Source: Scyliorhinus canicula (lineage: Eukaryota). Taken from it: a stretch of 64,000 bases of DNA. The notes under the pieces were generated by a model. It was given only the letters and a program-made list of their open reading frames with translations, ran no database searches and was not told the DNA's origin. Each line of letters begins with the position of its first letter. Within the stretch, counting starts at the first letter, position 1. Below, piece by piece: positions 901 to 62,140 of the stretch. Both the position numbers and the translations under genes were made by a program. The stretch spans positions 16,653,360 through 16,717,359 of the forward strand of contig NC_052164.1 in assembly GCF_902713615.1 (NCBI RefSeq), in the 5' to 3' direction.

Positions 901-934
901 ACCGCGCCCCCCCCCCCCCCCCCCCCCCCCCAAG

Positions 935-4000: not shown

Positions 4001-4594
4001 ATGCTGAGCTGTCGGGCTTTCCCCCCTTCACGTCTGTGCCAGCAGCCTGTGTACACATTGTGGCCTGTTCCACACAGGGTCTGTCAGCCACTGGAATGCA
4101 AAATGTGGAATCAGGTGGAAGAAGCAAGAAAGAGCATGAACTTCACGGATAGAGTTCTTGGGGAGCTGGCAAAAGAATTTTGGGAGGATAAGCCAAACAA
4201 TCAGGACAGCCGACCTGATGATAATGAAGAAGGTAAAAGACAATCAGGGGACAAGGATGGAGATGGATTTTCTCTGTCCCTGGATGTGCAGCGATTCTCC
4301 CCAGAAGAACTGAAGGTGAAAGTACTTGGAAGAAAAGTGCTGGTGACAGGAAAACACGAGAAGAAAAGGGATGATGGCAGCGGCTCTTACAGCTACAAAT
4401 ATGAAGAGTTCAGGAGAGAATTTCAGCTGCCAGACGATGCCGATGCTGAAGCTCTGAACTGCTGTTTGTCACAGGACGGTCGGTTAAAGGTTCAATCCCC
4501 ACGCCTGGCACTGCCAGCCGGGCATGAACGAACTGTGCCCGTCAGCATCACCTCTGACATAACAACCACACCCCCCACCCCGGCTAAATCCTGA
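4001..4594 (+). CDS. hsp30: Small heat shock protein HSP30/HSPB9-like, copy 1 (197 aa; alpha-crystallin domain intact, C-terminal tail cut by a +7 frameshift)
   Basis: ATG at 4001; FSLSLDVQRFSPEELKVKV...FRREFQLPDD...LSQDGRLKV alpha-crystallin domain; LWP N-terminal motif of HSP30; intronless. Confidence 0.85.
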   Translation: MLSCRAFPPSRLCQQPVYTLWPVPHRVCQPLECKMWNQVEEARKSMNFTDRVLGELAKEFWEDKPNNQDSRPDDNEEGKRQSGDKDGDGFSLSLDVQRFSPEELKVKVLGRKVLVTGKHEKKRDDGSGSYSYKYEEFRREFQLPDDADAEALNCCLSQDGRLKVQSPRLALPAGHERTVPVSITSDITTTPPTPAKS

Positions 4595-5284
4595 CCAAGA
4601 GGCACAGAGACAGGAGAGTGGGAAGGATGAGAAGAGAAATTAGGTGGATGGGAAAATGGACAATTAAAACTCATTTCCAGTGAAATTTTGTAAGAAGTAG
4701 GAATTGTTTATAGACAGACATGAGTTTCTGTGACCCTGACATGAGGGGACAATGCTGAAAGTTAATTATTTCCACTTGTATTCCACTTGTCAGCGTTAAT
4801 GTGGAGTATTTCTATGTGTATGTATATTGGAATAATAAAAACTTTCGAATGAAATGATGATGATTTGGCTTTTTTACTTCATAGAAAGAAATTGATATTA
4901 AACAACTGGAATCTAAATAATGACGTCCTTTCCACTCAGTAAAAAAAAACTTATTTAAAATTGGATTAATTTAAAACCCAGACAAATAATTCAATCATCA
5001 GCCAAGATCTGCCTCAAAGAGAATTTAGCTCATTAAAAGATATATCAAACTATTGTACAGAGCCAGTGCCCCAACACCTCTGTATTACTCTCCAGCCTCA
5101 CAATGAGCAGCAGCAACAGCTTTTCATCCAACACAGACAAAAGACAGGACACCACTCAATTACTGAATGGTAGTAACATCTTTCATTGGGGTTATCTGTT
5201 CGATATAAATTTCTGGGAATAAACCACGCCAACAGCTTTGCAAACAACTTTTATTTTGCATTATTTATTTGTATAATATTTTTT

Positions 5285-5475
5285 TTTAAATTTAGTGTGC
5301 CCAATATTTTTTATTCCCAATTAAGGAGCAATTTAATGTGGCTAATCCACCTAACCCACATCTTTGGATTGTAGGGCTGCGACCCACATAGACATGGGGA
5401 GAATGTGCATACCCCACATGGATTGTGACCTAGAGCCGGGATAGAACGCGGGTCCTTAGCGTCGTGAGGCAGCAG
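5285..5475 (-). mobile_element. Degenerate tRNA-derived SINE, short A-tailed form
   Basis: caattaagg..caattta..gtggc.aatccacctaacc..cacatctttgg core shared with the intact copy at 25077-25302. Confidence 0.75.
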
Positions 5476-5534
5476 CAAACAACTTTTATAATATTTCAGT
5501 TCAATAATATTATTGATCCTGTACCCTTGATCAT

Positions 5535-6345
5535 CAGAACATAAAAACAGGAGCAGGTGTAGGTCATTCAGCTGCTTCAGTTTCCTTCATCTTTCAATAG
5601 GATCATTGATGGTCATCTTCCAAGATTATATCGACTCTGGAGCAGTTCCTATTGGTTAGAGGGTAGCTAATGTAACCCCACTATTTAAAAGGGGAGGCAA
5701 AGATAAAACACAGAATTATAGACCAGTCAGCCTGACATCGCTCGGGACAAAAGTTTTAGAGTCCATTATCAAAATTTTATTAGCAGAGCACTTGGAAAAC
5801 AGTGGCAGAATCAGACAGAGAACATGGATTTACCAAAGGGAAATCATGTTTGTCAAATCTATTGGAATTCTTTGGAGATGTAGCTTATACAGTTGAGGGT
5901 GAGCCAGTGGATGTGGTTGATTTGATAGAAACCACACAGTGCAGCAGGCCATTGGCTCATCGAGTCTGCACCGACCCACAAAATGCGGCCCTTCCAGGTC
6001 CACACCTCCAGCCTAGCCATGTAAACAGGTAACTCCAACTAATATTTGGACTCTAAGGGGCAATTAAGCACAGCAGTCACTTCACCCGTCCATTTTTGGA
6101 TTTACAGAAGGCTTTCGACAAAGTCCCACATAAGAGATTAGACTGGAAAGTAAAAACGCATGGGATTGGGCTAGTCTATTGAGGTGGAGAGAAAACTCAT
6201 CGAAGACAGGAAACAAAGAGTAGGAATAGAGATATATTTTTCTAAATGGCAGCCAGAGACTAGTGGGTTACAATAGGGATTGGTGCTGGCTCATCAGCTA
6301 TCCACAATTTATATTCATGATTTAGGTGAGGGAAATAAATGTAAT
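5535..6345 (+). mobile_element. Degenerate CR1-type LINE RT fragments carried in the repeat unit (paralogs ~10660-11825, ~25330-25815, ~30240-31425, ~32435-33030)
   Basis: Remnants of NYRPVSLTS, HGFTKGKSCLSNLLEFF, DFQKAFDKVPH and RKQRVG motifs. Confidence 0.75.
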
Positions 6346-7085: not shown

Positions 7086-7417
7086 AGGGAATTCATTCCC
7101 TGGGTTTCAAAATAATCCAATTGACAATGATTTTTTGTTTTACTGAGTGTTAAATAAGTAAGTACCTAGTTTTCAGTTGTTTAATATCAATTCATTTTTA
7201 TGAAGTAATACAGCTGAATCATCATCAATACATTCAAAAGTATTTATTATTCCAATATACGCATACTTAGAAATAATCCGCAACAATGCTGGTAACAGCA
7301 CAGTACCAAAATAAAATAATTAACTTTCAGCATTATGCCCTCAGGTCAGGATCACAGAAACCCATTTCTGTCTTTAAACAATTCTTACTTCTCACAAAGG
7401 TTCACTGTAAATAAGTT

Positions 7418-8077
7418 TTAATTGTCCACTTTCCCATCCACCTCATTTCTCTTCTCATCTTTCCCACTCTCCCGTCTCTGTGCCTCTTGGTCAGGATTTA
7501 GCCGGGGAGTGGTTTTTGCGTCAGAGGTGATGTTGACGGGCACAGTTCGTTCATTCCCGGCTGGCAGTGCCAGGCGTGGGGCTTGAACCTTTAGCCGACC
7601 GTCCTGTGACAAACAGCAGTTCAGAGCTTCAGCATCGACATCGTCTGGCAGCTGAAATTCTCTCCTGAACTCTTCATATTTGTAGCTGTAAGAGCCGCTG
7701 CCATCATCCCTTTTCTTCTCGTGTTTTCCTGTCACCAGCACTTTTCTTCCAAGTACTTTCACCTTCAGTTCTTCTGGGGAGAATCGCTGCACATCCAGGG
7801 ACAGAGAAAATCCATCACCATCCTTGTCCCCTGATTGTCTTTTACCTTCTTCATTATCATCAGGTCTGTGGTCCTGATTGTTCGATTTTTCCACCAGAAA
7901 TTCTTTTGCCAGCTCCCCAAGAACTCTATCCATGAAGTTCATGCTCTTTCTTGCTTCTTCCACCTGATTCCACATGTTGCATTCCAGCGACTGACAGACT
8001 CTGTGTGGAACAGGCCACAATGTGTACACAGGCTGCTGGCACAGACGTGAAGGGGGGAAAGCCCGACAGCTCAGCAT
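7418..8077 (-). CDS. hsp30: HSP30/HSPB9-like, copy 2 (219 aa, intact)
   Basis: ATG at 8077, TAA at 7418; complete alpha-crystallin domain and VPV motif; TATA and HSE upstream. Confidence 0.9.
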   Translation of the reverse strand: MLSCRAFPPSRLCQQPVYTLWPVPHRVCQSLECNMWNQVEEARKSMNFMDRVLGELAKEFLVEKSNNQDHRPDDNEEGKRQSGDKDGDGFSLSLDVQRFSPEELKVKVLGRKVLVTGKHEKKRDDGSGSYSYKYEEFRREFQLPDDVDAEALNCCLSQDGRLKVQAPRLALPAGNERTVPVNITSDAKTTPRLNPDQEAQRRESGKDEKRNEVDGKVDN

Positions 8078-8169
8078 TGTCTCTGCCTCTTCTCTCACTT
8101 CTCTCAAAGCCACTGATGTGAACTGAAAGTCTTCAGTCTCTGATCTGCTGCAGCACTCAGAACACACGC

Positions 8170-8343
8170 CTTATATATTCTACTGTCAGAAATCCAGACC
8201 CTTCCAGAATGGACTCAACTTTGCTGGGTTCATGACATGTGAGTGGACAATAAATGACGTCTCATCTCATCCTCGATTTAAAGGAGAATGACTCGACTCA
8301 GTGACACCCACTGGAGCCATTCCAGAGATTTCCGGAATGTTCT
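8170..8343 (-). promoter_or_regulatory. Copy 2 promoter: TATA box, CRE-like TGACGTCT, HSE 8319-8343
   Basis: aTTCc aGAga tTTCc gGAAt gTTCt inverted nGAAn array; cttatata at ~8170. Confidence 0.8.
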
Positions 8344-8440
8344 CAGCCAGGGACATCATAGATGGGAGGAGCAATGTTAATGAGTGACAGCCTAGCAACA
8401 GGCAGTGTGTGCAGCAATGTCAGATTCTTTATCAACCGGG

Positions 8441-8786: not shown

Positions 8787-8883
8787 CCCGGTTGATAAAG
8801 AATCTGACATTGCTGCACACAATGCCTGCTGCTAGGCTGTCACTCATTAACATTGCTCCTCCCATCTGTGCTGTCCCTGGCTG

Positions 8884-9057
8884 AGAACATTCCGGAAATA
8901 TCTGGAAAGGCTCCAGTGGGTGTCACTGAGTCGAGTCATTCTCCTTTAAATCAAGGATAAGACGAGACGTCATTTATTGTCAACTCACGGGTCATGAACC
9001 CAGCAAAGTTGAGTTCATTCTGGAAAGGTCTGGGTTTCTGGCAGTAGAATATATGAG
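8884..9057 (+). promoter_or_regulatory. Copy 3 promoter: HSE 8884-8908, variant TATA (TATATGAG)
   Basis: aGAAc aTTCc gGAAa taTCt gGAAa. Confidence 0.75.
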
Positions 9058-9149
9058 GCGTGTGTTCTGAGTGCTGCAGCAGATCAGAGACTGAAGACTG
9101 GCAGTTCACATCAGTGGCTTTGAGAGAAGTGAGAGAAGAGGCAGAGACA

Positions 9150-9809
9150 ATGCTGAGCTGTCGGGCTTTCCCCCCTTCACGTCTGTGCCAGCAGCCTGTG
9201 TACACATTGTGGCCTGTTCCACACAGGGTCTGTCAGTCGCTGGAATGCAACATGTGGAATCAGGTGGAAGAAGCAAGAAAGAGCATGAACTTCATGGATA
9301 GAGTTCTTGGGGAGCTGGCAAAAGAATTTCTGGTGGAAAAACCAAACAATCAGGACAACAGACCTGATGATAATGAAGAAGGTAAAAGACAATCAGGGGA
9401 CAAGGATGGAGATGGATTTTCTCTGTCCCTGGATGTGCAGCGATTCTCCCCAGAAGAACTGAAGGTGAAAGTACTTGGAAGAAAAGTACTGGTGACAGGA
9501 AAACACGAGAAGAAAAGGGATGATGGCAGCGGCTCTTACAGCTACAAATATGAAGAGTTCAGGAGAGAATTTCAGTTGCCAGACGATGTTGATGCTGAAG
9601 CTCTGAACTGCTGTCTGTCACAGGACGGTCGGTTAAAGGTTCAAGCCCCACGCCTGGCACTGCCAACCGGGAATGAACGAACTGTGCCCTTCAACATCAC
9701 CTCTTACATAACAACCACCCCCCGGCTAAATCCTGACCAAGAGGCACAGAGACAGGAGAGTGGGAAAGATGAGAAGATAAATGAGGCGGATGGAAAAATG
9801 GAAAATTAA
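9150..9809 (+). CDS. hsp30: HSP30/HSPB9-like, copy 3 (219 aa, intact)
   Basis: ATG at 9150, TAA at 9809; AATAAA at 9983-9988. Confidence 0.9.
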   Translation: MLSCRAFPPSRLCQQPVYTLWPVPHRVCQSLECNMWNQVEEARKSMNFMDRVLGELAKEFLVEKPNNQDNRPDDNEEGKRQSGDKDGDGFSLSLDVQRFSPEELKVKVLGRKVLVTGKHEKKRDDGSGSYSYKYEEFRREFQLPDDVDAEALNCCLSQDGRLKVQAPRLALPTGNERTVPFNITSYITTTPRLNPDQEAQRQESGKDEKINEADGKMEN

Positions 9810-11010
9810 AACTCATTTACAGTGAACTTTTTAAAGAAGTAAGAGTTGTTTATCGACAGAACTGAGCTTCTGTGACCCTGACAGGGGACAATGCTGAAAG
9901 TTAATTATTTCCACTTGTATTTTGGTACAGTGCTGTTGTCAGCGTTAATGTGGAGTATTTCTATGTGTATGTATATTGGAATAATAAATACTTTTGAATG
10001 AAATGATGATGATTTGGCTTTTTTACTTCATAGAAAGAAATTGATATTAAACAACTGGAACTAAATAATGACTTATTTTCCACTCAGTAAAAAAAAACTT
10101 TTAAATTGGATTAACTGAAAACCCAGACAAATAATTCAATCAGCCAAGATCTGCCTCAAAGAGAATTTAGCTCATTAAAAGATATATCAAACTATTGTAC
10201 AGAGCCAGTGCCCCAACACCTCTGTATTACTCTCCAGCCTCACAATGAGCAGCAGCAACAGCTTGTCATCCAACACAGACACAAGACAGGACACCACTCA
10301 ATTACTGAGTGGTGGAAACATCTTTCATTGGGGTTACCTGTTTGACATAAATACCTGGGAAGTAAACCATCCTAACAGCTTTGCAATCTTCTATTTCACT
10401 TTATTTATTTATTTAATTAAAAAATAAATTTAGAGTACCCAATAATTTGTTTTCCAATCAAGGGGTAATTTAACGTGGCCAATCCACCTGACCTGCACAT
10501 CTTTGGGCTGTGGGGGTGTGACCCTCATCAACATAGGGAGAATGCGCAAACTCCACATGGACTGTGACCCAGAGCCGGGATCGAACGCGGGAGGCAGCAG
10601 CAAACAACTTTTATAATGTTTCAGTTCAATAACATTATTGATCCAGGACCCTTGATCATCAGAACTTTAATAAGGAGCAGTTGTAGGCCATTCATCTGCT
10701 TCAGTCTCCTTCACCTTTCAATAGGATCATTGGTTGCCATCTTCCAAGATTATATAGATTCTGGAGCAGTTCCTATTGGTTAGAGGGTAGCTCATGTAAC
10801 CCCACTATTTAAAAGGGGAGGCAGAGGTAAACACAGAATTATAGACCAGTCAGCCTGACATTGGTAGTGGGGACAAATTTAAAGTCCATTATCAAAGAAT
10901 TATTAGCAGACCACTGAGAAAACAGTCAGAATCAGACAGAGAACATGGATTTACCAAAGGGAATTCATGTTTGACAAATCTATGGGAATTCTTTGAGGAT
11001 GGGGCATTTG

Positions 11011-14165: not shown

Positions 14166-14825
14166 TTAATTGTCCATTTTTTCATCCGCCTCATTTCTCT
14201 TCTCATCTTTCCCACTCTCCTGTCTCTGTGCCTCTTGGTCAGGATTTAGCCGAGGAGTGGTTGTTGTGTCAGAGGTGATGTTGACGGGCACAATTCGTTC
14301 ATTCCCGGCTGGCAGTGCCAGGCGTGGGGCTTGAACCTTTAACTGACCGTCCTGTGACAAACAGCAGTTCAGAGCTTCAGCATTGACATCGTCTGGCAAC
14401 TGAAATTCTCTCCTGAACTCTTCGTATTTGTAGCTGTAAGAGCCACTGCCATCATCCCTTTTCTTCTCGTGTTTTCCTGTCACCAGCAATTTGCTTCCAA
14501 GTACTTTCACCTTCAGTTCTTCTGGGGAGAATCGCTGCACATCCAGGGACAGAGAAAATCCATCTCCATCCTTGTCCCCTGATTGTCTTTTACCTTCTTC
14601 GGTATCATCAGGTCTGTTGTCCTGATTTCCTGGTTTCTCCACCAGATATTCTTTTGCCAGCTCCTCAAGAACTCTATCCATAAAGTTCATGCTCTTTCTT
14701 GCTTCTTCCACCTGATTCCACATGTTGCATTCCAGCGACTGACAGACCCTGTGTGGAACAGGCCACAATGTGTACACAGGCTGCTGGCACAGACGTGAAG
14801 GGGGGAAAGCCCGACAGCTCAGCAT
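14166..14825 (-). CDS. hsp30: HSP30/HSPB9-like, copy 4 (219 aa, intact)
   Basis: ATG at 14825; complete domain; TATA 14918-14925. Confidence 0.9.
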   Translation of the reverse strand: MLSCRAFPPSRLCQQPVYTLWPVPHRVCQSLECNMWNQVEEARKSMNFMDRVLEELAKEYLVEKPGNQDNRPDDTEEGKRQSGDKDGDGFSLSLDVQRFSPEELKVKVLGSKLLVTGKHEKKRDDGSGSYSYKYEEFRREFQLPDDVNAEALNCCLSQDGQLKVQAPRLALPAGNERIVPVNITSDTTTTPRLNPDQEAQRQESGKDEKRNEADEKMDN

Positions 14826-15525
14826 TGTCTCTGCCTCTTCTCTCACTTCTCTCAAAGCCACTGATGTGAACTGAAAGTCTTCAGTCTCTGATCTGCTGCT
14901 GCACTCAGAACCCACGCCTTATATATTCTACGGTCAGAAATGCAGACCCTTCCAGAATGAACTCAACTTTGCTGGGTTCATGACCCGTGAGTTGACAATA
15001 AATGACGTCTCGTCTCATCCTTGATTTAAAGGAGAATGACTCGACTCAGTGACACCCACTGGAGCCATTCCAGAGATTTCCGGAATGTTCTCAGCCAAGG
15101 ACAGCAATGATGGGAGGAGCAATGTTAATGAGGGACAGCCTAGCAGCAGGCAGTGTGTGCAGCAATGTCAGATTCCTTTTAAGAAGTAAGAGTTGTTTAT
15201 CGACAGAAATGAGCTTCTGTGACCCTGACATTAGGGCACAATGCTGAAAGTTAATTATTTCCACTTGTATTTTGGTACTGTGCTGTTGTCAGCGTTAATG
15301 TGGAGTATTTCTATGTGTATGTATATTGGAATAATAAATACTTTTGAATGAAATTATGATGATTTGGATTTTTCACTTCATAGAAAGAAATTGATATTAA
15401 ACAACTGGAACTAAATAATGACTTATTTTCCACTCAGTAAAAAAAAACTTTTCAATTGAATTAACTGAAAACCCAGACAAATAATTCAATCAGCCAAGAT
15501 CTGCCTCAAAGAGAATTTAGCTCAT
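14271..15525. repeat. 1.25-kb direct repeat (second copy 19418-20671) flanking the first young L1
   Basis: Offset of 5147 nt; only a handful of differences by eye. Confidence 0.95.
14918..15091 (-). promoter_or_regulatory. Copy 4 promoter: TATA box and HSE 15067-15091
   Basis: Same nGAAn array as copy 2. Confidence 0.8.
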
Positions 15526-18500
15526 GTTGCAGGAGACACATCTGAAAGTGTCGGACCAGACCAGGCTAAGGAAGGGCTGGATTAGCCAGATCTTCCACTC
15601 GGACTCGAAGTCCAGAGGGGTGGCAATCATGATCAACAAGCGCGTGCAATTTGAGGCAGAGGGCATATCCGCAGACAGGGGGGGCAGATACCTGATGGTA
15701 CGGGGCAGACTGGAGGGGAGAAGAGTGGTGCTGGTGAATATATATGCCCCGAACTGGGATGACGTGGACTTCATTAAAAGAGTGCTGGGGAAGATCCCGG
15801 ACCTGGATTCTCGCAGGCTAATAATGGGAGCGGACTTTAACATGGTCCTTGAGCCGACTTTGGATCGGTTGTGTCCCAGAACGGGTAGACTCTCAGGAAG
15901 TGCAAGGGAGCTCAAAGGGTTTATGGAGCAAATGGGGGCAGTGGACCCCTGGAGAGATAGACAGCCAACAGGAAGGGGCTACTCGTTTTACTCGCACGTC
16001 CATAAAGTATATTCCAGGATAGATTTCTTTGTACTAAGCAGGAACTGTATGGGGGAGGTAAAGAACACGGAATACTCAGCAATTACCATTTCAGACCATG
16101 CCCCGCATTGGGTGGACCTGCAGTTCGGGAAGCGAGCTATCAACGCCCGCAATGGAGGCTAGATGTGGGACTGCTGTCGGAGGAGGGGATCTGCGAGAGG
16201 CTTCGCAAATGTATAAAAAATTACCTGCAGGTGAATGACACTGGGGAGGTCTCAGCGGCGACCGTGTGGGAGGCGCTAAAGGCAGTAGTGCGGGGGGAGC
16301 TGATTTCAATTGGAGCCCATAGAGCCAAGGCAGACCGGGCAGAGATGGATAGATTGGTCAGGGAAATGGGCCGGATAGATGAAGAGCACGCGGAGTCCCC
16401 GGGGGAGGTTTTACTCAGGGAAAGGCAGAGGCTACAGGCGGAACTGGGGGCACTATCCACGAGCAGGGCCGTGGAACAGCTTAGGAAGGCGAGGGGAGTG
16501 GTGTACGAGTATGGGGAAAAGGCTAGCAGACTGTTAGCGCAGCAACTTAGGAGGAGGGAGGCGGCCAGGGAAATAGGTAGAGTGAGGGACGAGGGGGGGC
16601 ACAAAGTGGAGGATCCGGCAGAATTGAATAGGGTATTCCGGGACTTCTATCGTAAGCTGTATACTTCGGAGCCGCCAGAAGAACCGGAGGGGATGAAAAG
16701 GTTTCTGGATGGGTTAACTTTCCCAACAGTTGGGGGGGGGGGGGGCGAGTGGAAGAGCTGGGGGCCCCGATTAGAGTAGAGGAGGTATTGGGGGGCCTAA
16801 AGGCCATGCAGTCGGGGAAGTCCCCGGGACCGGATGGATACCCAGTAGAGTTTTATAGGAAGTTCTCTGAGCTGGTGGGCCCGGTCTTGGCGAGGGTTTT
16901 CAATGAGGCAAGGGACAGAGGGACCCTGCCGCCGACGATGTCACAAGCCACCATATCTCTGATATTAAAGCGGGGTAAAGACCCGGAGGTGTGCGGGTCC
17001 TACAGGCCAATCTCCCTGATTAATGTAGATGCCAAGCTCCTGGCAAACGTACTGGCGGGTAGAATGGAGGACTGTGTACCGGAGGTGATTGGGGAGGATC
17101 AAACGGGGTTCGTGAAAGGTAGGCAGCTGGCGGCCAATCTGAGGAGATTGCTCAATGTGATAATGATGCCCCCGGCGGGTAGAGAGGTGGAGGTAGTGGT
17201 GGCTATGGACGCCGAGAAGGCCTTTGACCGGGTGGAGTGGGAATATCTATGGGAGGTGCTCGGACGGTTTGGGTTCGGGGAGGGATTGGTGGATTGGATC
17301 AAATTATTATATCAGGCCCCGAGGGCCAGCGTCAGGACCAACAGAGAAGTGTCGGAGTACTTTAGGTTGTACCGAGGGACCAGGCAGGGCTGCCCGCTCT
17401 CCCCGCTGCTGTTTGCGCTGGCCATAGAGCCGCTGGCGATTGCGCTGAGAGCCGCAGAGGGTTGGAAGGGGATGGTGAGGGGCGGGGTTGAACATAGGGT
17501 TTCTCTTTATGCAGACGACCTGCTCCTGTACGTGTCGGACCCAGTGGCCGGGATGGGAACTATACTGGGAATGCTGAGGGAGTTCGGCCAGTTCTCAGGA
17601 TACAAATTAAATACGGTCAAGAGTGAAATGTTTGTGGTACAGGCAAGGGGCCAGGAGAACAGATTGAGAGGGCTACCGTTTAGGTTAGTTGAGGAAAATT
17701 TCCGGTATTTGGGAATCCAGGTGGCGCGAGACTGGGGCAGGCTGCACAAGTTAAATTTGGCCAGGGTGGTGGAGCAAATGAAGGGAGAGTTTCGGAGATG
17801 GGATGCACTCCCGCTGTCGCTGGCAGGGAGTGTGCAGACTGTAAAGATGACAATCCTCCCTCGATTTTTGTTTATTTTTCAGTGCCTCCCGATCTTTATC
17901 CCACAGTCCTTCTTCAAAAGAGTTAACGGGCTGATCATGAGCTTTGTCTGGGCGGGAAAGTCTCCGCGGGTGAAGAAGGCGATGTTGGAGAGGAACCGCA
18001 GCGAGGGAGGGCTGGCGTTGCCGAGTCTGGTCAATTATTACTGGGCGGCCAACATCGCTATGATAAGGAAGTGGATGGTGGGTACAGGGTCTATTTGGGA
18101 GCGAGTGGAGGCGGCTTCGTGCAGGGGCTCCAGTTTGGAAGCCCTGGTCACGGCTCCTCTACCGCTGCCGCCGGCCAAGTACACCACCAGCCCGGTAGTG
18201 GTGGCGACCCTGCGGATATGGGGCCAGTGGAGGAGGGATGTGGGGGAGATGGGGGCGTCTGTCTGGGCGCCAATCTGCGACAACCATCGGTTTGCCCCCG
18301 GCAGTATGGATGGGGGGTTCCGAGTATGGCGGCGAGCAGGGGCGGGAAGGGTGGGTGATATGTTCCTGGAAGGGAGCTTCGCGAGTTTGAGGAGCTTGGA
18401 GGAGAAATTTGGGTTGGTAGGGGGAAATGATTTTAGATACCTACAGCTGCGGGACTTTGTTCGTAGACAGGTCCCATCTTTCCCGCGCCTCCCGCCAATG

Positions 18501-19418
18501 GGGATCCTAGACAGAATAGGCTCTGGGAGGTACGAAGGGGAGGGTAGAGTCTCAGGTATTTATAAGGTGCTCATGAGGGAGGAAGGGTCCCAGACAGAGG
18601 AACTGAAACTTAAATGGGAGGAGGAGCTAGGCGGGGAAATGGAGGATGGGCTGTGGGCAGAGGCCCTGAGTAGGGTAAACTCGACCGCGACATGTGCAAG
18701 GCTCGGGCTGATCCAATTTAAGGTCGTTCACCGGGCCCATATGACGGTGGCTCGGATGAGCAAATTTTTTGTGATAGAGGACAAATGCGCTAGGTGCGCG
18801 GGAGGACCAGCGAACCATGTGCACATGTTTTGGGCATGCCCTGAGCTGAGGGGGTACTGGGAGGGATTTGCGGGGGTCATGTCCCAGGTGCTAAAAACAA
18901 GGGTGGTGATGAGTCCAGGGGTGGCAATTTTTGGGGTTTCGGAAGACCCAGGCGTCCAGGGGGAGAAAGCGGCCGATGTGCTGGCCTTTGCTTCCCTGAT
19001 AGCCCGGCGACGAATATTATTGGCGTGGAGGGACTCAAAGCCCCCGAAGACTGAGTGGTGGCTTGCGGACATGTCAAGTTTCCTGGGGATGGAAAAAATT
19101 AAGTTCGCCTTGAGGGGATCTGTGCAGGGGTTCACCCGGAGGTGGCAACCATTTATTGACTTCTTTGCGGGAGAGTGAGCGTCAGCAGGGGGGTGGGGGG
19201 AGGGGGGGGGGGGGGGGTAGAGTAGAGTAGGAGGGAAAATATGGCGGGTAGTACGGGTGGGAGGGGAGCGGGCTTGTGCAATACGGTATGATGGAAGTAT
19301 TGAAAGTACGTGGATGTTTGCACATTTTTGCCTTTTTTGCTTCCTTTCTGATGATGTCTGTAACTGTTTATAAAGCCAAAAACTACCTCAATAAAATTGT
19401 TTATTAAAAAAAAAAAAA
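15524..19418 (+). mobile_element. Young 5'-truncated L1-clade LINE (ORF2 from MLQETH: EN, RT, CCHC; G-rich 3'UTR; poly-A); two frameshifts
   Basis: ORFs 15524..16162, 16108..16779 and 16749..19178 with [25 protein letters not shown] and CARC...HMFWAC; AATAAA then A13 at 19406-19418. Confidence 0.95.
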
Positions 19419-19972
19419 GAGGTGATGTTGACGGGCACAGTTCGTTCATTCCCGGCTGGCAGTGCCAGGCGTGGGGCTTGAACCTTTAACTGACCGTCCT
19501 GTGACAAACAGCAGTTCAGAGCTTCAGCATTGACATCGTCTGGCAACTGAAATTCTCTCCTGAACTCTTCGTATTTGTAGCTGTAAGAGCCACTGCCATC
19601 ATCCCTTTTCTTCTCGTGTTTTCCTGTCACCAGCAATTTGCTTCCAAGTACTTTCACCTTCAGTTCTTCTGGGGAGAATCGCTGCACATCCAGGGACAGA
19701 GAAAATCCATCTCCATCCTTGTCCCCTGATTGTCTTTTACCTTCTTCGGTATCATCAGGTCTGTTGTCCTGATTTCCTGGTTTCTCCACCAGATATTCTT
19801 TTGCCAGCTCCTCAAGAACTCTATCCATAAAGTTCATGCTCTTTCTTGCTTCTTCCACCTGATTCCACATGTTGCATTCCAGCGACTGACAGACCCTGTG
19901 TGGAACAGGCCACAATGTGTACACAGGCTGCTGGCACAGACGTGAAGGGGGGAAAGCCCGACAGCTCAGCAT
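19388..19972 (-). pseudogene. hsp30: HSP30/HSPB9-like, copy 5: near-identical to copy 4 but the 3' end is replaced by antisense L1 tail (ends VPVNITSFFFFNKQFY*)
   Basis: ATG at 19972; homology stops at 19418 at the L1 poly-A; promoter intact (HSE 20214-20238), so it may still be expressed. Confidence 0.75.
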
Positions 19973-20669
19973 TGTCTCTGCCTCTTCTCTCACTTCTCTC
20001 AAAGCCACTGATGTGAACTGAAAGTCTTCAGTCTCTGATCTGCTGCTGCACTCAGAACCCACGCCTTATATATTCTACGGTCAGAAATGCAGACCCTTCC
20101 AGAATGAACTCAACTTTGCTGGGTTCATGACCCGTGAGTTGACAATAAATGACGTCTCGTCTCATCCTTGATTTAAAGGAGAATGACTCGACTCAGTGAC
20201 ACCCACTGGAGCCATTCCAGAGATTTCCGGAATGTTCTCAGCCAAGGACAGCAATGATGGGAGGAGCGAAGTTAATGAGGGACAGCTAGCAGCAGGCAGT
20301 GTGTGCAGCAATGTCAGATTCCTTTTAAGAAGTAAGAGTTGTTTATCGACAGAAATGAGCTTCTGTGACCCTGACATTAGGGCACAATGCTGAAAGTTAA
20401 TTATTTCCACTTGTATTTTGGTACTGTGCTGTTGTCAGCGTTAATGTGGAGTATTTCTATGTGTATGTATATTGGAATAATAAATACTTTTGAATGAAAT
20501 TATGATGATTTGGATTTTTTACTTCATAGAAAGAAATTGATATTAAACAACTGGAACTAAATAATGACTTATTTTCCACTCAGTAAAAAAAAACTTTTCA
20601 ATTGAATTAACTGAAAACCCAGACAAATAATTCAATCAGCCAAGATCTGCCTCAAAGAGAATTTAGCTC

Positions 20670-23600: not shown

Positions 23601-24570
23601 CTTTGTTCGTAGACAGGCCCCATCTTTCCCACTCCTCCCGCCAATGGGGATCCTCGACAGAATAGTCTCTAGGAGGGAAGAAGGGGAGGGCAGAGTCTCG
23701 GGTATATATAAGGTGCTTATGAGGGAGGAAGGGTCCCAAACAGAGGAACTGAAACTTAAATGGGAGGAGGAGCTAGGTGGGGAAATGGAGGATGGGCTGT
23801 GGGCAGAGGCCCTGAGTAGGGTAAATTCGACTGCGACATGTGCTAGGCTCGGGCTGATCCAATTTAAGGTCGTTCACCGGGCCCATATGACGGTGGCTCG
23901 GATGAGCAAATTTTTCGGGATAGAGGACAAATGCGCTAGGTGCGCGGGAGGACCAGCGAACCATGTTCACAGGTTTTGGGCATGCCCTGAGCTGAGGGGG
24001 TACTGGGAGGGATTTGCAGGGGTCATGTCCCAGGTGCTAAAAACAAGGGTGGTGATGAGTCCAGGGGTGGCAATTTTTGGGGTTTCGGAAGACCCGGGCG
24101 TCCAGGGGGAGAAAGAGGCCGATGTTTTGGCCTTTGCTTCCCTGATAGCCCGGCGACGAATATTATTGGCGTGGAGGGACTCAAAGCCCCCGAAGACTGA
24201 GTGGTGGCTTGCGGACATGTCGAGTTTCCTGGGGATGGAAAAAATTAAGTTCGCCTTGAGGGGATCTGTGCAGGGGTTCACCCGGAGGTGGCAACCATTT
24301 ATTGACTTCCTTGCGGGAGAGTGAGCATCAGCAGGGGGGTGGGGGGGAGAGGAGGGGGGGGGGGGGGGGGGGGGGGGTAGAGTAGAGTAGGAGGAAAAAT
24401 ATGTCGGGTAGTACCGGTGGGAGGGGAGCGGGCTTGTGCAATATGTTACGATTGAAGTATTGAAAGTACGTGGATGTTTGCGCATTTTTGCCTTTTTTGC
24501 TTTTTCTGATGATGTCTGTAACTGTTATGAAGCCGAAAACTACCTCAATAAAATTGTTTACTAAATAAAA
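20670..24570 (+). mobile_element. Second young 5'-truncated L1-clade LINE with 18-bp target-site duplication; stops and frameshifts in ORF2
   Basis: TSD aaagagaatttagctcat at 20654-20671 and 24569-24586; empty sites at ~5017, ~10158 and ~29737; stops at ~21695 and ~21839. Confidence 0.95.
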
Positions 24571-25076
24571 AGAGAATTTAGCTCATTAAAAGATATATCA
24601 AACTATTGTACAGAGCCAGTGCCCCAACACCTCTGTATTACTCTGCAGCCTCACAATGAGCAGCAGCAACAGCTTGTCATCCAACATAGACACAAGATAG
24701 GACACCACTCAATTACTGAATGGTAGAAACATCTTTCATTGGGGTTATCTGTTCGACATAAATATCTGGGAAGTTAACCAACAGCTTTGCAACCAACTTT
24801 TATTTTGCATTATTTATTTATTTAACTTTAAAAAAAATTCAGAGTGCCCAATATTATTTTTCCCAATTAAGGGGCAATTTAATGTGGCCAATCCACCTAA
24901 CCTGCACATCTTTGGGCTGTGGGGATGTGACCCTCATAGACATGGGGAGAATGTGCATACTCCACATGGATTGTGACCTAGAGCCGGGATCGAACGCGGG
25001 TCCTCAGCGCCGTGAGGCAGCAGCAAACAACTTTTATAATATTTCAGTTCAAAAATATTATTGATCCTGTACCCTT

Positions 25077-26894: not shown

Positions 26895-27554
26895 TTAATT
26901 GTCCATTTTCCCATCCACCTCATTTCTCATCTCATCTTTCCCACTCTCCTCTCTCTGTGCCACTTGGTCAGGATTTAGCCGGGGAGTGGTTGTTGTGTCA
27001 GAGGTGATGCTGATGGGCACAGTTCGTTCATTCCCGGCTGGCAGTGCCAGTCGTGGGGCTTGAACCTTTAGGTGACCGTCCTGTGACAAACAGCAGTTCA
27101 GACCTTCAGCATCGACATCGTCTGGCAGCTGAAATTCTTTCCTGAACTCTTCATATTTGTAGCTGTAAGAGCCGCTGCCATCATCCCTTTTCTTCTCGTG
27201 TTTTCCTGTCACCAGCACTTTTCTTCCAAGTACTTTCACCTTCAGTTCTTCTGGGGAGAATCGCTGCACATCCAGGGACAGAGAAAATCCATCTCCATCC
27301 TTGTCCCCTGATTGTCTTTTACCTTCTTCAGTATTATCAGGTCTGTTGTCCTGATTGGTTGGTTTTTCCACCAGAAATTCTTTTGCCAGCTCCCCAAGAA
27401 CTCTATCCATGAAGTTCATGCTCTTTCTTGCTTCTTCCACCTGATTCCACATGTTGCATTCCAGCGACTGACAGACCCTGTGTGGAACAGGCCACAATGT
27501 GTACACAGGCTGCTGGCACAGACGTGAAGGGGGGAAAGCCCGACAGCTCAGCAT
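26895..27554 (-). CDS. hsp30: HSP30/HSPB9-like, copy 6 (219 aa, intact)
   Basis: ATG at 27554; complete domain; HSE 27804-27828 and TATA upstream. Confidence 0.9.
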   Translation of the reverse strand: MLSCRAFPPSRLCQQPVYTLWPVPHRVCQSLECNMWNQVEEARKSMNFMDRVLGELAKEFLVEKPTNQDNRPDNTEEGKRQSGDKDGDGFSLSLDVQRFSPEELKVKVLGRKVLVTGKHEKKRDDGSGSYSYKYEEFRKEFQLPDDVDAEGLNCCLSQDGHLKVQAPRLALPAGNERTVPISITSDTTTTPRLNPDQVAQREESGKDEMRNEVDGKMDN

Positions 27555-28729: not shown

Positions 28730-29389
28730 ATGCTGAGCTGTCGGGCTTTCCCCCCTTCACGTCTGTGCCAGCAGCCTGTGTACACATTGTGGCCTGTTCC
28801 ACACAGGGTCTGTCAGTCGCTGGAATGCAACATGTGGAATCAGGTGGAAGAAGCAAGAAAGAGCATGAACTTCATGGATAGAGTTCTTGGGGAGCTGGCA
28901 AAAGAATTTCTGGTGGAAAAACCAAACAATCAGGACAACAGACCTGATGATAATGAAGAAGGTAAAATTCAATCAGGGGACAAGGATGGAGATGGATTTT
29001 CTCTGTCCCTGGATGTGCAGCGATTCTCCCCAGAAGAACTGAAGGTGAAAGTACTTGGAAGAAAAGTGCTGGTGACAGGAAAACACGAGAAGAAAAGGGA
29101 TGATGGCAGCGGCTCTTACAGCTACAAATATGAAGAGTTCAGGAGAGAATTTCAGTTGCCAGACGATGTCGATGCTGAAGCTCTGAACTGCTGTCTGTCA
29201 CAGGACGGTCGGTTAAAGGTTCAAGCCCCATGCCTGGCACTGCCAACCGGGAATGAACGAACTGTGCCCTTCAACATCACCTCTTACATAACAACCACCC
29301 CCCGGCTAAATCCTGACCAAGAGGCACAGAGACAGGAGAGTGGGAAAGATGAGAAGATAAATGAGGCGGATGGAAAAATGGAAAATTAA
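28730..29389 (+). CDS. hsp30: HSP30/HSPB9-like, copy 7 (219 aa, intact; 2 aa different from copy 3)
   Basis: ATG at 28730, TAA at 29389. Confidence 0.9.
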   Translation: MLSCRAFPPSRLCQQPVYTLWPVPHRVCQSLECNMWNQVEEARKSMNFMDRVLGELAKEFLVEKPNNQDNRPDDNEEGKIQSGDKDGDGFSLSLDVQRFSPEELKVKVLGRKVLVTGKHEKKRDDGSGSYSYKYEEFRREFQLPDDVDAEALNCCLSQDGRLKVQAPCLALPTGNERTVPFNITSYITTTPRLNPDQEAQRQESGKDEKINEADGKMEN

Positions 29390-35059: not shown

Positions 35060-35713
35060 ATGCTGAGCTGTCGGGCTTTCCCCCCTTCACGTCTGTGCCA
35101 GCAGCCTGTGTACACATTGTGGCCTGTTCCACACAGGGTCTGTCAGCCGCTGGAATGCAACATGTGGAATCAGGTGGAAGAAGCAAGAAAGAGCATGAAC
35201 TTCATGGATAGAGTTCTTGGGGAGCTGGCAAAAGAATTTTGGGAGGCAAAGCCAAAAAATCAGGACAACAGACCTGATGATAATGAAGAAGGCAAAAGAC
35301 AATCAGGGGACAAGGATGGAGATGGATTTTCTCTGTCCCTGGATGTGCAGCGATTCTCCCCAGAAGAACTGAAGGTGAAAGTACTTGGAAGAAAAGTACA
35401 GGTGACAGGAAAACACGAGAAGAAAAGGGATGATGGCAGCGGCTCTTACAGCTACAAATATGAAGAGTTCAGGAGAGAATTTCAGCTGCCAGACGATGTC
35501 GATGCTGAAGCTCTGAACTGCTGTTTGTCACAGGACGGTCGGTTAAAGGTTCAAGCCCCACGCCTGGCACTGCCAACCGGGAATGAACGAACTGTGCCCG
35601 TCAGCATCACCTCTGACGCAACAACCACTCCTCGGCTAAATCCTGACCAAGAGGCACAGGCGAGTGGGAAAGATGAGAAGAGAAATGAGGTGGATGCAAA
35701 AATGGACAATTAA
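35060..35713 (+). CDS. hsp30: HSP30/HSPB9-like, copy 8 (217 aa, intact; 6-nt in-frame tail deletion; divergent 3'UTR)
   Basis: ATG at 35060, TAA at 35713; AATAAA near 35876 and 35887. Confidence 0.9.
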   Translation: MLSCRAFPPSRLCQQPVYTLWPVPHRVCQPLECNMWNQVEEARKSMNFMDRVLGELAKEFWEAKPKNQDNRPDDNEEGKRQSGDKDGDGFSLSLDVQRFSPEELKVKVLGRKVQVTGKHEKKRDDGSGSYSYKYEEFRREFQLPDDVDAEALNCCLSQDGRLKVQAPRLALPTGNERTVPVSITSDATTTPRLNPDQEAQASGKDEKRNEVDAKMDN

Positions 35714-45225: not shown

Positions 45226-45290
45226 GAAACAAGTGGTGGAAATGGAGAACAGAATGGGCAGGACTTAGAGAAGGACTTTTCAGACCTGAT

Positions 45291-45603
45291 GGGCGGCACG
45301 GTCGCACAGTGGTTGCTTCACAGCTCCAGCGTCCCAGGTTCGATTCCCGGCTTGGGTCACTGTCTGTGGAGAGTCTGCACATTCTCCCCGTGTCTGCGTG
45401 GGTTTCCTCCGGGTGCTCCGGTTTCCTCCCGCAGTCCAGAGATGTGCAGGTTAGATGGATTGGCCGTGATCAATTGCCCATAGAGTCCAAAGAAAAAGGT
45501 TGGGGTTACGGGGATAGGGTGGAGGTAGGTAAGGTTATCTTTCCAGGGGCCGGTGCAGACTCGATGGGCTGAATGGCCTCCTTCTGCACTGTAGATTCTA
45601 TGA
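45291..45603 (+). mobile_element. tRNA-derived SINE inserted in the hsp30 pseudogene
   Basis: gggcggcacgg head, B box ggttcgattcc, tail ...gcactgtagattctatga; splits agacctgat|...taatgaaga. Confidence 0.85.
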
Positions 45604-46847
45604 CATTAATGAAGATGGTAAAAAACAATCAAGGGACAAGGATGGAGATGGATTTTCTCTGTCCCTGGATGTGCAGCGATATTCCCCGGAAGAACTGAAG
45701 GTGAAAGAACTTGGAGGGAAAGTACTGGTGTCTGGAAGCTGCAATATGAAAAGCCATTATGGCAGCGGCTCTTACAGCTACAAATATGAAGAGTCCAGGA
45801 GAGGATTTCAGCTGCCAGACGGTGTCGATGTTGAAGCTCTTAACTGCTGTTTGTCACAGAACGATTGGTTAAAGGTTCAAGCCCCATGACTGGCACTGCC
45901 AGCTGTGAATGAACGGGCCATCCCTATTGATATCACCTCTGATACAACATTACTGCCCAATCAGGCGTTGGCACATAGAAGTAGGGACTGAATGACTGCA
46001 ATGTTAAAGTTAATGAGAGGTGTGGGAGGAATAGAATGGGACAATTTGAAGTGATCAAGTCGACACATGTTTCCTATACCCACAGTTTAATCTGGGCAAA
46101 TGTTGCATAAAAACCTCAATATGTGTGAGTGACAAAGAGATTGAATTTGATATTCCTAGTAATTGGCTTCATTGTTCTTCTTCTTGGAATTTTATATTTG
46201 CAGTAAATTTCTTCTCAAATACTGGCACAAGGGGCAAAACAGAACAGGTAAATAACAGGAGAGAGAAAGATACAAACATGTTTTAACTTGAATTTAGATA
46301 CGGAGTGACTTAATGTCGTAAAACATCCCAAGGCACTTTCCAGGAGTATTATCAAACAAAATTTGTTTTCAGGAGATATTATGACAACTGGCCAATGGGT
46401 TGGCCGTAGATGTAGATTTTATTTCACGGGAACGTCATTGCAGTGTTGATGTAAGCCTACTTGTGACAATAATAAATATTATTATTATTAAGGAGTATTT
46501 TCAAGTAGAAGAGAGCGATGGAGAGACAGAGAGGTTAGAGGAGGAAATTCCAGACATTAGTTCCCAAAATCAGGGATTCACAAGGAGCTTGGACTGGAGG
46601 AGCACAGTTGTGGGATTGGAGGAGGTCACAGAGATAGGAAGGGACAAGACCATAGAGGGATTTGGAAAAAAAGATTGAAGCATTGCTGGACTAGGAACCA
46701 ATAAAGGTCAATAAAGGAATCAAGTGCGTTGCAATCATTATATTGCCAAATATGGCAAAAATTGCAACACAGAATAGTTTTACGCTAGGCCCCCCATCTT
46801 CTTATTTGATGTGCAACAAGAATTAGATTCCTTCAAATAAGTAAGTA

Positions 46848-59034: not shown

Positions 59035-59712
59035 TGGTTGTGTGGATGAGCAGAGGGATCTCGGTGTCCATGTACATAGATCCCTGAAAGTATGCACCCA
59101 GGTTGATAGGGTTGTGAAGAAGGCCTATGGTGTGTTGGCCTTTATTGTTAGAGGGATTGAGTTCCGGAGCCATGAGGTCATGTTGCAGCTGTACAAAACT
59201 CTAGTACGACCGCATTTGGAGTATTCCTATAGGAAGGACGTGGAAGCTTTGGAACGGGTGCAGAGGGGATTTACCAGGATGTTGCCTGGTATGGAAGGAA
59301 AATCTTATGAGGATAGGCTGATGGACTTGAGGTTGTTTCCGTTAAAGAGAAGGTTAAGAGGTGATTTAATAGAGGCATACAAAATGATCAGAGGGTTAGA
59401 TAGGGTGGACAGTGAGAGCCTTCTCCCACGGATGGAGGTGGCTAGCACGAGGGGACATAGCCTTAAATTGAGGGGTAATATAGGACAGACGTCAGAGGTA
59501 GGTTTTTTTTACGCAAAGAGTGGTGAGGCCGTGGAATGCCCTACCTGCAACAGTAGTGAACTCGCCAACATTGAGGGCATTTAAAACTTTATTGGATAAG
59601 CATATGGATGATAATGGCATAGTGTAGGTTAGATGGCCTTTAGTTTTTGACTTCCCATGTCGGTGCAACATCGTGGGCCGAAGGGCCTGTACTGCGCTGT
59701 ATCGTTCTATGT
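59035..59712 (+). mobile_element. CR1-type (HER1-like) LINE 3' end
   Basis: EQRDLGVHVHRSLK, LYKTLVRPHLEY, LERVQR.FTRMLPG, RLRGDLIE.YK; tail gggccgaagggcctgt...ttctatg. Confidence 0.85.
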
Positions 59713-59719
59713 GGGTGAG

Positions 59720-62024
59720 CCATCATCTTCCATCCTTCAGTAACTGGTGGCCAATCTCCTGAATTAAAACAAGCAAGGAACTTTGCAGAGTTCCCGTTTC
59801 TCAATTTGAAACTGTTTCCTTTAAATTAAAACATGGTTTAAAAATGTTTTACTCTATGCTGGGAATTAGTATCTGGTCATTTTTGTCACAACATAATTGA
59901 AAGACTGTTGTGCAATTTTCTACATTTCTCACATGGGGTTTTCCATTTTAAATGCTCCATTCCTAATGACCGTACATGGTTAGTGTTACAAAATGGGAAA
60001 GAACAAGAGTTAATTTGGGTGGCTCCTGAAGTCAGCCGGTGCAAGTCATGGCTACAGCACGAACCATGAAATTATTTGGCAATATTCTCCCTTTTTAAAG
60101 AGCTCATTCTGTTGTAGAGGTTAGAGACACAGAGTGAGGGAGGAGAGTGATACATGTAGATTTAGAAAGCTCAGCTTATGATGATTCAATATTAAGTGTT
60201 GTCTGTGAAATCTGGTGTTCTCAGTCAGGCTCAGGTCACGCAAATGCTTGGTTGATCCCTGACGCAAATCCATTAAGTGGCAGATTTCGTACAAACTTCC
60301 CCAAATGCTGAAAGTGACAAAATAACCATGATATCCTTTCTAGTGCTTCCAAGTTTTGTGCACAGACAATTCAGAGCTCACAGGTCCTTTGTATATTTAA
60401 TCACCAAGACCTAGGTTGTATTCAGGAAACCACCTCACTTTGAACTGTGGTGGTTTTGTTTGTTGCAAGTTCGCATTACCAAAAAAGATAGATAGATACA
60501 ACCATTTTTTGAAGTTGACGAGTTTATTAGAATTAATCAGCACTAATTTGTGGGATGTTAAACCACTAGTGCTCAGTTATCAAAATGTGCCTCAGTTCCA
60601 GAATGTTAAAGGCTGTTTCCACAGTAGTGTGTACAGATCCACATTTGATATCAGTAGGATACACTTGTACGAAAAATACAGATTGAGATTATGGTGCAAT
60701 TATATTGCAAGGCACTAGTTGCTGGATGAGTCCTGCATTGTACTTAGCACAAGTCATCTCAGAACTAGGACTACTTACTGAAGTTAGTGAAAATGAAATC
60801 ACTCGCTGCTGGAGGACAAAATTAAGTTTCATTATCACTTCCAGTTCAAAAAGCCATTCACTCACCCTTTTACATTCTAAATCTTGTCACATTAGACATT
60901 TTATCTCAAGCTAGCTGGCAGCAAGTCTGAAGATGCTATTAACAGTACTGCACTTGAAGCATACTTTATACCAAATTGTTATAAGAATTAGTTCCACCAT
61001 GTGCATTTGAAAAGTTGTCAAATTAATACTTCAATACATAAAATATACTGCTGGTTAATTGCCACTTGTATTGCTACAAGTCTGTGACACCAAGGGAGTT
61101 GGTAATTAAAAAGTTCTATACACTCTTATCATTACGGAACAAATACAAACTGGAATTAATTGATACCTCCCTCTATTTTTATTTGTCAAATTACAGATTT
61201 TTGTATTACAGACTGGTGTTTCTCACACACGCAAGCTCGGCCTTTCACTGCCAACAGTCACAGCGTGACTGAACAAGCTCCACAAATCAGAGCAGTGTGC
61301 AAGATTGTAATTACTGACATTAGTGACATCACATCACCTCCAAGGACATCAAAATTTACAAGTTATTGCAAACATCTGAATAGAATAGTGCATTACACTG
61401 GAAACCAAAAAGAACACTCCATGCTTTCTGAACACAAAGGAAGAACATAATAGGTATATTCGAAGGTGCTGTATGGACATAATGGTCTACTGATTTGAAT
61501 ATATGGTAAAAGAAAACTTACATTACAAATACAGAAATTCTTTTCAAAATTCATAATTGAGATTTGGTCAGAACGAACATTTAACCGCTGATTCCCATGT
61601 TAAATTAATATTAGTTACGTTTATTAGATGGGTTGTGTACTAGGTAAGTAGCTCTTTAGGAAGATTTTTCACAAAAAGACACCTAATCTATATTTTTTTA
61701 AAAATCTTTTCTCTCCAGAATATTATACAAGATTGTAGAGTCTGAAAATGAAGGAATCGCCCAGAAAAAGTTGGGTCAAAATAACTGGTGCATGCATCCG
61801 CCACCGGAATTAGAAGGGAAGAGCAAAGGGTTCATATTTTTAAAAAAAAAAGTGATTTAAGACTTAAATTTATTTTATATGGAAAAGTGTTGGCGGATTT
61901 CCTCCCATCTGATTGGAGTGGTGCGAGGAATTAATGCATCGAACTGTCACTGTTCTTGCTGTAAGTGCGATTGGTAAATGGGATTCCGGTTGGGGTTTTG
62001 TGAAGACACCTGCCAGTTACTAAT
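59720..62024 (-). other. RAB5C: Probable RAB5C 3'UTR and downstream flank (3' end not determined)
   Basis: AT-rich region with no recognisable repeats directly after the stop codon; minus-strand AATAAA at ~61870, ~61620, ~61180 and ~60525. Confidence 0.5.
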
Positions 62025-62140
62025 TTAATTACTGCAGCACTGGCTCCGACTCTGTGGACTGGTCTCCTGGAGGTCCACGCCCCTGGTTCGGCCTGAGGTT
62101 CCACCCGCATTCTGAGGTTCGTTCTTCGGCAGCTTTTTGG
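62025..62140 (-). CDS. RAB5C: Last coding exon of the Rab5-family small GTPase RAB5C (upstream exons outside the window)
   Basis: Pyrimidine-rich tract and CAG acceptor (62143-62141), phase-1 exon reading (A)[37 protein letters not shown]; matches the RAB5C C-terminus with the CCSN prenylation motif. Confidence 0.92.

Follow-up and report, generated by a model that had tools for sequence, protein, structure and literature searches.

The hsp30 genes of Xenopus are intronless, clustered and driven by heat-shock elements (HSEs), and among teleosts, salmonids carry several heat-inducible copies. Clusters of multiple hsp30 genes are a classic finding in both frogs and salmonids. The HSP30 literature is said usually to state that HSP30 was lost in mammals. 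Human HSPB9 is found at one locus with DHX58, KCNH4 and RAB5C (PMC6957513), and mammalian HSPB9 is testis-specific and not a general stress gene (PMC4317599, PMC7432308). The conserved-domain database puts HSP25 and HSP30 under 'HSPB9-like' in a report where synteny is not discussed (PMC5101479), whereas in a gene-family survey Hsp30 and Hspb9 are classed as two subfamilies (PMC8945262). The library searched contained no paper on hsp30 in sharks, nor any that connected HSPB9 with HSP30 through synteny or a RAB5C-KAT2A argument. Here, a 64-kb stretch of the catshark Scyliorhinus canicula genome (assembly GCA_902713615.2), referred to as the window, was analysed. The window probably represents the RAB5C-proximal part of a cluster of HSP30-type small heat-shock protein (sHSP) genes (HSPB11-like, HSP25, 'HSPB9-like') at an ancestral slot beside RAB5C, with mammalian HSPB9 as its diverged descendant.

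A tblastn search of the window with one sHSP open reading frame (ORF) gave nine matches, designated c1 to c9 (Table 1). The initial annotation had counted nine intronless HSP30-like genes; the absence of introns was borne out and the count was not, since six of the nine copies were intact (c2, c3, c4, c6, c7 and c8, encoding 217-219 amino acids, aa), two were altered in the tail (c1 and c5) and c9 was a pseudogene. The ORFs of 217-219 codons were uninterrupted, and splice joints were absent from the RNA reads and contigs. The c1-c8 proteins shared 92-100% identity with the query copy and 92-99% with one another, and all eight had the N-terminus MLSCRAF. The HSP20/alpha-crystallin domain (Pfam PF00011) covered residues 86-180 of c3 with 70.7 bits (cut-off 20.8; E-value 1.2e-19). 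In the PDB, the shark sHSP matched the domains of CRYAB, CRYAA, HSPB6 and HSPB1, and its protein-atlas label was HSPB11-like/HSP20.

The 5' half of c9 was gone behind a repeat insertion at about 45290-45600. Because c9 was equally distant (about 72% identity) from every elasmobranch copy, it is read as an old pseudogene, and the same figure ruled it out as a conserved 'ancestral' copy. A repeat resembling a short interspersed nuclear element (GGCGGCACGGTCGCACAGTGG...) at 45290-45600 adjoins and truncates c9.

The family of the shark genes was examined by phmmer bit scores, with HSPB1, HSPB2, HSPB3, HSPB6, HSPB7 and HSPB8 compared through PDB chains. The best match of c3 outside cartilaginous fish was the frog sHSP beside RAB5C (136 bits, 44% identity), followed by quail HSP30C-like (133 bits), quail HSPB9 (115 bits) and turtle HSP30C-like (103 bits). 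The frog and quail scores stood against 66-73 bits for CRYAB, 61 for CRYAA, 52 for HSPB6, 51 for HSPB1, 38 for HSPB8, 35 for HSPB2 and 28 each for HSPB7 and HSPB3, which argues against another HSPB family. Judged from the encoded proteins, the shark genes are clearly of the HSP30/HSP25 type. The proteins are most likely ATP-independent holdase chaperones inducible through HSF1, as would be expected from their family.

The initial annotation had assigned a 116-nt minus-strand exon to the C-terminus of RAB5C, with the 3' end of the gene facing the cluster, and both assignments held. The exon boundaries were exact: a polypyrimidine tract and AG precede the last exon, whose coding part runs from CC AAA AAG CTG to AGT AAT TAA, and the splice is in frame, the G of the penultimate exon and the CC of the last exon giving Ala. 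Being on the minus strand, the gene points its 3' end at the cluster, at a distance of 16 kb from c9 and 26 kb from c8, which both lie on the plus strand. The 45-aa catshark tail was compared with 47 named RAB5A, RAB5B and RAB5C tails; no shark RAB5 was among the 120 homologues listed. The penultimate exon ends in NEIFMAI in catshark, RAB5A and RAB5C (NDIFMAI in eel) and in NDLFLAI in RAB5B. The tail motif is VDLTE in all RAB5A, VDLHE, VDLNE or VDLSE in RAB5B, and VDLQE in catshark and in 16 of the 19 named RAB5C, the other three being teleost variants; the catshark tail also has the RAB5C-type SRSQCCSN.

Alignment of the catshark tail with RAB5C gave 39/45 identical residues for mammals, 38/45 for paddlefish and platypus and 37/45 for a bird (sparrow), compared with 34/45 for the best named RAB5A and 34/45 for the best RAB5B. 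An unnamed coelacanth protein with VDLTE gave 35/45, and a solved RAB5A chain gave 22/34. With the quail RAB5C that is flanked by KAT2A and KCNH4, 29/37 residues were identical, and the last 37 residues of the sparrow protein equal those of quail. On these residues, the gene next to the cluster is RAB5C, and RAB5A and RAB5B are excluded. In UniRef, two RAB5C-type proteins of Gadus morhua (P0170 and P0224) bear the title 'potassium voltage-gated channel subfamily H member 4a', a name probably carried over from the neighbouring KCNH4.

Comparison of the RAB5C region in other vertebrates showed the order DHX58 - KAT2A - sHSP of 200 aa (-) - HSPB9/HSP25 of 192 aa (+) - RAB5C (-) - KCNH4 in quail, and RAB5C (+) - HSPB9, a 162-aa HSP20 protein (-) - KAT2A (+) in a carnivore. 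In the tailed frog Ascaphus truei, the order was KCNH4 - RAB5C (+) - sHSP (-) 4.9 kb downstream - a weaker sHSP-like match (+), head-to-head. The sHSP thus lies between RAB5C and KAT2A in quail and carnivore, and the RAB5C-proximal sHSP is convergent with RAB5C in catshark, frog, quail and carnivore alike. Positional homology with HSPB9, as proposed initially, is supported from the RAB5C side by this shared slot and orientation. Since an sHSP is present there in cartilaginous fish and three tetrapod lineages, an ancestral gnathostome locus is the economical reading. The catshark cluster would fill the place downstream of RAB5C where a frog has an HSP30-like gene, quail an HSP30C-like/HSP25 (HSPB9) pair and a mammal a single-copy HSPB9. 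Most likely the locus was already present in the ancestor of jawed vertebrates, and mammalian HSPB9 would have descended from it and diverged.

The weaker frog match (L010, 30657-31325) is unannotated and stands head-to-head with the annotated frog sHSP. The annotated 254-aa model of the latter probably starts too far upstream, as an internal MLCLHL matches the N-terminus of the bird and shark proteins.

Several observations weigh against a single ancestral locus that includes mammalian HSPB9. Shark sHSPs scored 47-49 bits with the mammalian (carnivore) HSPB9, which was no better than its score with HSPB6; in the reverse comparison, mammalian HSPB9 gave 55 bits with turtle, 51 with quail, 49 with shark, 49.4 with HSPB6 and 41 with CRYAB. 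Its end branch was very long, at 3.4 changes per site. Sampling of paralogues was thin: CRYAB alone served as outgroup for the trees, and comparison with the remaining HSPBs was limited to PDB bit scores. The trees covered elasmobranch, bird, turtle and frog sequences, mammalian HSPB9 and CRYAB, and were built without Xenopus HSP30, teleost hsp30/hspb9/hspb11, HSPB1-3, HSPB6-8 and HSPB10. In paddlefish, three cypriniforms and the lizard Anolis sagrei, RAB5C is followed directly by KAT2A (in the loach, with ORC3 between), and neither annotation nor tblastn showed an sHSP in this gap, so an ancestral locus would have to have been lost or moved at least twice. No sHSP was present within 10 kb of RAB5C in paddlefish and the three cypriniforms, which places their hsp30/hspb11/hspb9 genes elsewhere. 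The catshark locus was seen from the RAB5C flank only, as the window begins 4 kb left of c1 in debris of long interspersed nuclear elements (LINEs), and in two sawfish loci (L002 and L003), which carry at least five sHSP copies and a fragment, neither a flanking gene nor a RAB5 exon was found. Finally, the dominant reads of two raw RNA runs derive not from the window copies but from P0002, a tenth S. canicula paralogue (213 aa, 88% identity) on the same chromosome outside the window.

The gene between rab5c and kat2a in the loach Paramisgurnus dabryanus (L009, 17644-19749) is ORC3-like, encodes 701 aa and is not in the gaps of the other two cypriniforms.

These points bear first on mammalian HSPB9, which could be another sHSP paralogue, or a retrocopy, sitting in the gap, with the shark, frog and bird genes orthologous at an old locus and the true HSP30 lost in mammals. 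Such an origin would fit the long branch, the HSPB6 score (49.4 bits, compared with 49-55 bits for the shark, quail and turtle HSP30-like proteins), the lack of any HSE-like site within 600 bp upstream of the carnivore HSPB9, and the separation of Hsp30 and Hspb9 in the gene-family survey (PMC8945262). It is nevertheless unlikely, because mammalian HSPB9 is intronless, sits in the slot of the quail and frog genes and, like them, is convergent with RAB5C, and its best match in the set was turtle HSP30C-like, with which it was joined in the 22-sequence tree (94/85; frog and birds, 96/94). Constraining all tetrapod sequences, mammalian HSPB9 included, to one clade cost 0.09 log-likelihood units and was not rejected (approximately unbiased test, p-AU 0.42). 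In addition, NCBI calls the galliform HSP25-type genes 'heat shock protein beta-9', and the conserved-domain database groups HSP25/HSP30 as 'HSPB9-like' (PMC5101479). Because the HSPB9 branch is very long and its score with shark no better than with HSPB6, the orthology of HSPB9 rests on position; a tie between the shark genes and mammalian HSPB9 is compatible with the sequences, in which the tie itself is weak.

An independent move of the catshark cluster to the side of RAB5C by a lineage-specific rearrangement, with no positional homology to the tetrapod locus, is very improbable. The single visible flank, the 16-26 kb of repeat-rich DNA that lie before RAB5C is reached from the cluster, and the empty gap of ray-finned fishes would allow it; the neighbour, the side and the orientation nevertheless match three tetrapod lineages, and the decayed c9 between the cluster and RAB5C, about 72% identical to all living copies, indicates long residence.

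Within the favoured reading of an ancestral RAB5C-adjacent HSP30 locus, we lean slightly towards a fuller history, in which a head-to-head, HSE-driven pair stood between KAT2A and RAB5C in the jawed-vertebrate ancestor and was retained and re-amplified again and again in elasmobranchs by birth-and-death and conversion, the slot was emptied in ray-finned fishes and squamates, and HSPB9 is the sole mammalian survivor, a fast-evolving testis gene without heat-shock control. If true, this history would run counter to textbooks, in which hsp30 is absent from mammals.

Upstream of the catshark genes, perfect HSE sites (nGAAnnTTCnnGAAn) occurred seven times in 64 kb, against 0.71 expected from block-wise single-base shuffles (maximum 4). 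All seven were placed about 265 nt 5' of the ATG of a copy (273 nt for c6), and c1 had a distal HSE with one mismatch at the same position. In all eight copies, the distal HSE was a five-unit run (aGAAc aTTCc gGAAa tnTCt gGAAn), a second, weaker three-unit HSE was located at -132, and a TATA box (TATATAAG) was located at -100; the HSE promoters ascribed to the cluster genes in the initial annotation were thereby confirmed. The region from -350 to -1 was 93-98% identical between copies, as high as the coding sequence (96%), and the similarity collapsed past -350 and, for many pairs, within the 3' untranslated region (UTR). Each gene is preceded by a conserved promoter module, about 350 bp long, that combines the distal multi-unit HSE with the proximal HSE and the TATA box.

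An HSE scan of the upstream regions of the sawfish loci gave no passing site, although the TATA box and 5'UTR align well with those of the catshark. The 72-nt 5'UTR (9078-9149) and the TATA region were strikingly conserved between catshark and sawfish (L002, 9930-10000), with long identical leader runs that include GCAGATCAGAGACTGAAG and GAGGCAGAGAC, while the upstream HSEs do not align. The conserved stretch may be a regulatory leader. In the catshark copies, the frame is open for 30 codons 5' of the ATG.

Self-comparison of the window showed that the head-to-head arms of c2 and c3 (7100-8440 vs 10126-8787) had 92% identity, and that c6 and c7 formed a second pair. A 4-kb block containing c3 recurs at c7 with 98.6% identity, and a 5.1-kb tandem unit of gene and LINE (14271-19414 vs 19418-24571) had 96.9% identity. 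In the tandem unit, the gene part and the first 300 bp or so of the LINE were 99-100% identical and the LINE body was 95-98% identical; this mismatch points to gene conversion across the gene at a later time, or to a history more complicated than a single duplication. Between copies, the synonymous divergence (dS) was 0.008-0.10 (mean 0.06), and dN/dS was about 0.5. Segmental duplications, both inverted (head-to-head) and in tandem, have probably multiplied a repeated core of about 1.0-1.3 kb, whose copies stay similar through recent duplication, gene conversion or both.

The LINE of the tandem unit is of the APE/RT type, with copies at 15524-19178 and 20670-24324 that have Exo_endo_phos endonuclease and RVT_1 reverse transcriptase domains; one copy keeps an open reverse transcriptase ORF of 809 aa. 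More LINE debris was observed at 79-3184, 43.2-44.2 kb, 49.0-49.8 kb and 58.9-59.6 kb.

Relatives of the catshark genes were annotated as 'heat shock protein beta-11-like', '30C-like' or '30-like' in about 25 elasmobranch species (shark, skate and ray), most with several distinct copies that share a chromosome (Carcharodon has at least 12, Hemitrygon at least 10 and Heptranchias seven); these genes were thus already annotated, and the multi-copy state is the elasmobranch norm. In a phylogenetic tree of 68 sequences, the elasmobranch copies clustered mainly by genus or order, with a few cross-genus orthologous pairs. The window copies, P0002 and S. torazame P0009 formed one Scyliorhinus group, in which P0002 paired with the S. 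torazame protein (support 98). P0002 was annotated as 'heat shock protein beta-11-like [Scyliorhinus canicula]' and had no called neighbour gene within 10 kb. The recent amplification or homogenisation suggested initially fits both the dS range and the clustering of copies by lineage, and the pattern of the cluster is one of birth-and-death evolution with local homogenisation.

Part of the copy number could be an assembly artefact of haplotypes or of collapsed or expanded tandem repeats, with a true count that is lower or different. The blocks of 4-5 kb with 96.9-98.6% identity are of the kind that would raise this concern, as is the contrast in c4/c5 between gene parts of 99-100% and LINE bodies of 95-98% identity. 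An artefact is quite unlikely, however, as many sites, some of them non-synonymous, distinguish the copies, whose tails and flanks differ too; the window contains no N runs; the NCBI annotation has neighbouring copies spaced like c6-c8; and 5-12 copies are found in other elasmobranch assemblies too.

Reads of the two raw oligo-dT RNA runs were on the plus strand over c2 and on the minus strand over c3, and would represent sense transcripts, as expected from a reverse-stranded library. The coverage ended in the 300 bp or so 5' of each ATG, and the central spacer had trace reads only. Contigs of an older run, cDNA-like and without splice joints, had their 5' end at 9078, which is about 28 nt downstream of the TATA position, and a loose poly(A) end after 10003; the loose letters at 9078 resemble a SMART-type cDNA adapter. 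The c3 mRNA inferred from these contigs is intronless and about 0.93 kb long.

Most raw RNA reads were only 95-99% like c2/c3, and in run X22 only 122 of 801 were at least 99% like them. The dominant read variants imply nine amino-acid changes, all of which (9/9) agree with P0002, so the window copies are at most weakly expressed in these samples; the reads were ruled out on these two counts as expression of the window copies. Weak expression would suit strictly inducible genes and is not evidence for induction, and P0002 may be a constitutively expressed member. The depth was about 8-fold apart between the two runs, which belong to one study, and most of the reads were those of P0002.

Table 1. 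Coordinates of the sHSP copies, promoter elements, transcript and RAB5C segments in the window
Feature	Position	Strand	Description
sHSP copy c1	4001..4594	+	homology 3911-4664; frameshift near 4573 swaps the C-terminal tail; 197-aa ORF
sHSP copy c2	7418..8077	-	intact, 219 aa; head-to-head with c3
Distal HSE of c2	8330..8342	-	perfect 3-unit core within 5-unit run; 265 nt 5' of ATG
Distal HSE of c3	8885..8897	+	aGAAcaTTCcgGAAatatCtgGAAa; 5 units, one imperfect
c3 transcript	9078..10003	+	inferred from cDNA-like contigs of the older run; no splice joints
sHSP copy c3	9150..9809	+	intact, 219 aa
sHSP copy c4	14166..14825	-	intact, 219 aa
sHSP copy c5	19388..19972	-	194 aa; C-terminal tail missing at junction of the 5.1-kb tandem unit (gene + LINE)
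sHSP copy c6	26895..27554	-	intact, 219 aa; head-to-head with c7
sHSP copy c7	28730..29389	+	intact, 219 aa
sHSP copy c8	35060..35713	+	intact, 217 aa; last intact copy, convergent with RAB5C
sHSP pseudogene c9	45602..45958	+	alpha-crystallin-domain half only; 72% identity; in-frame stop
Last RAB5C exon, coding part	62025..62140	-	116 nt; coding 62140-62028, stop 62027-62025; acceptor AG 62142-62141
Last RAB5C intron	62141..63976	-	1836 nt, GT...AG
Penultimate RAB5C exon, 3' end	63977..64000	-	..VNEIFMAI + G; cut by window edge; donor GTATGT next

The confusingly named HSP30, HSP25, HSPB11 and HSPB9 genes are anchored by these data to one conserved chromosomal slot, which is extended to cartilaginous fish and gives a rooted framework for sHSP nomenclature. 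The locus also frames the question of how a multi-copy, stress-inducible chaperone locus became a single, testis-restricted and rapidly evolving mammalian gene, and the cluster may be a usable system in which to study how stress genes undergo concerted evolution in shark genomes, which evolve slowly. The finding adds a lineage to a kind of locus already known; it is of use for the nomenclature and evolution of sHSPs, and is incremental and unsurprising to specialists, because the genes are in RefSeq already, the galliform HSP25-type genes are named HSPB9 and hsp30 clusters have long been familiar from frogs and salmonids.

Compared with known systems, the teleost hsp30/hspb11/hspb9 genes belong to the same annotation name family as the shark genes. 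Mammalian HSPB9 shares the intronless structure, the HSP20 domain, and the slot and orientation of the quail and frog genes; it differs in being a single copy of 162 aa with only about 30-40% identity to shark over the domain. Upstream of the Ascaphus truei sHSP, at about 110-135 nt, are a TATA box and an HSE with one mismatch; the frog locus was read to the 10-kb flank, and its link to the named HSP30A-E is through the NCBI 'HSP30C-like' names only.

The avian HSP25 and HSP30C-like genes are an intronless alpha-crystallin pair, placed head-to-head and flanked by KAT2A on one side and the RAB5C 3' end on the other, with the proximal copy convergent as in catshark. HSP25 is 'heat shock protein beta-9' (HSPB9) at NCBI in galliforms and HSPB11 in Swiss-Prot. 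Birds have two genes at the locus and the shark has eight or more, and quail has only a one-mismatch HSE-like site, 5' of one gene. The avian pair is not arm-for-arm orthologous with the shark pairs: the two bird genes were each other's closest relatives in the tree, so the bird and shark head-to-head pairs would be independent or homogenised within each lineage. The avian proteins share about 40% identity with the shark proteins (115-133 bits), and the N-terminal ML(S)CR motif is common to both.

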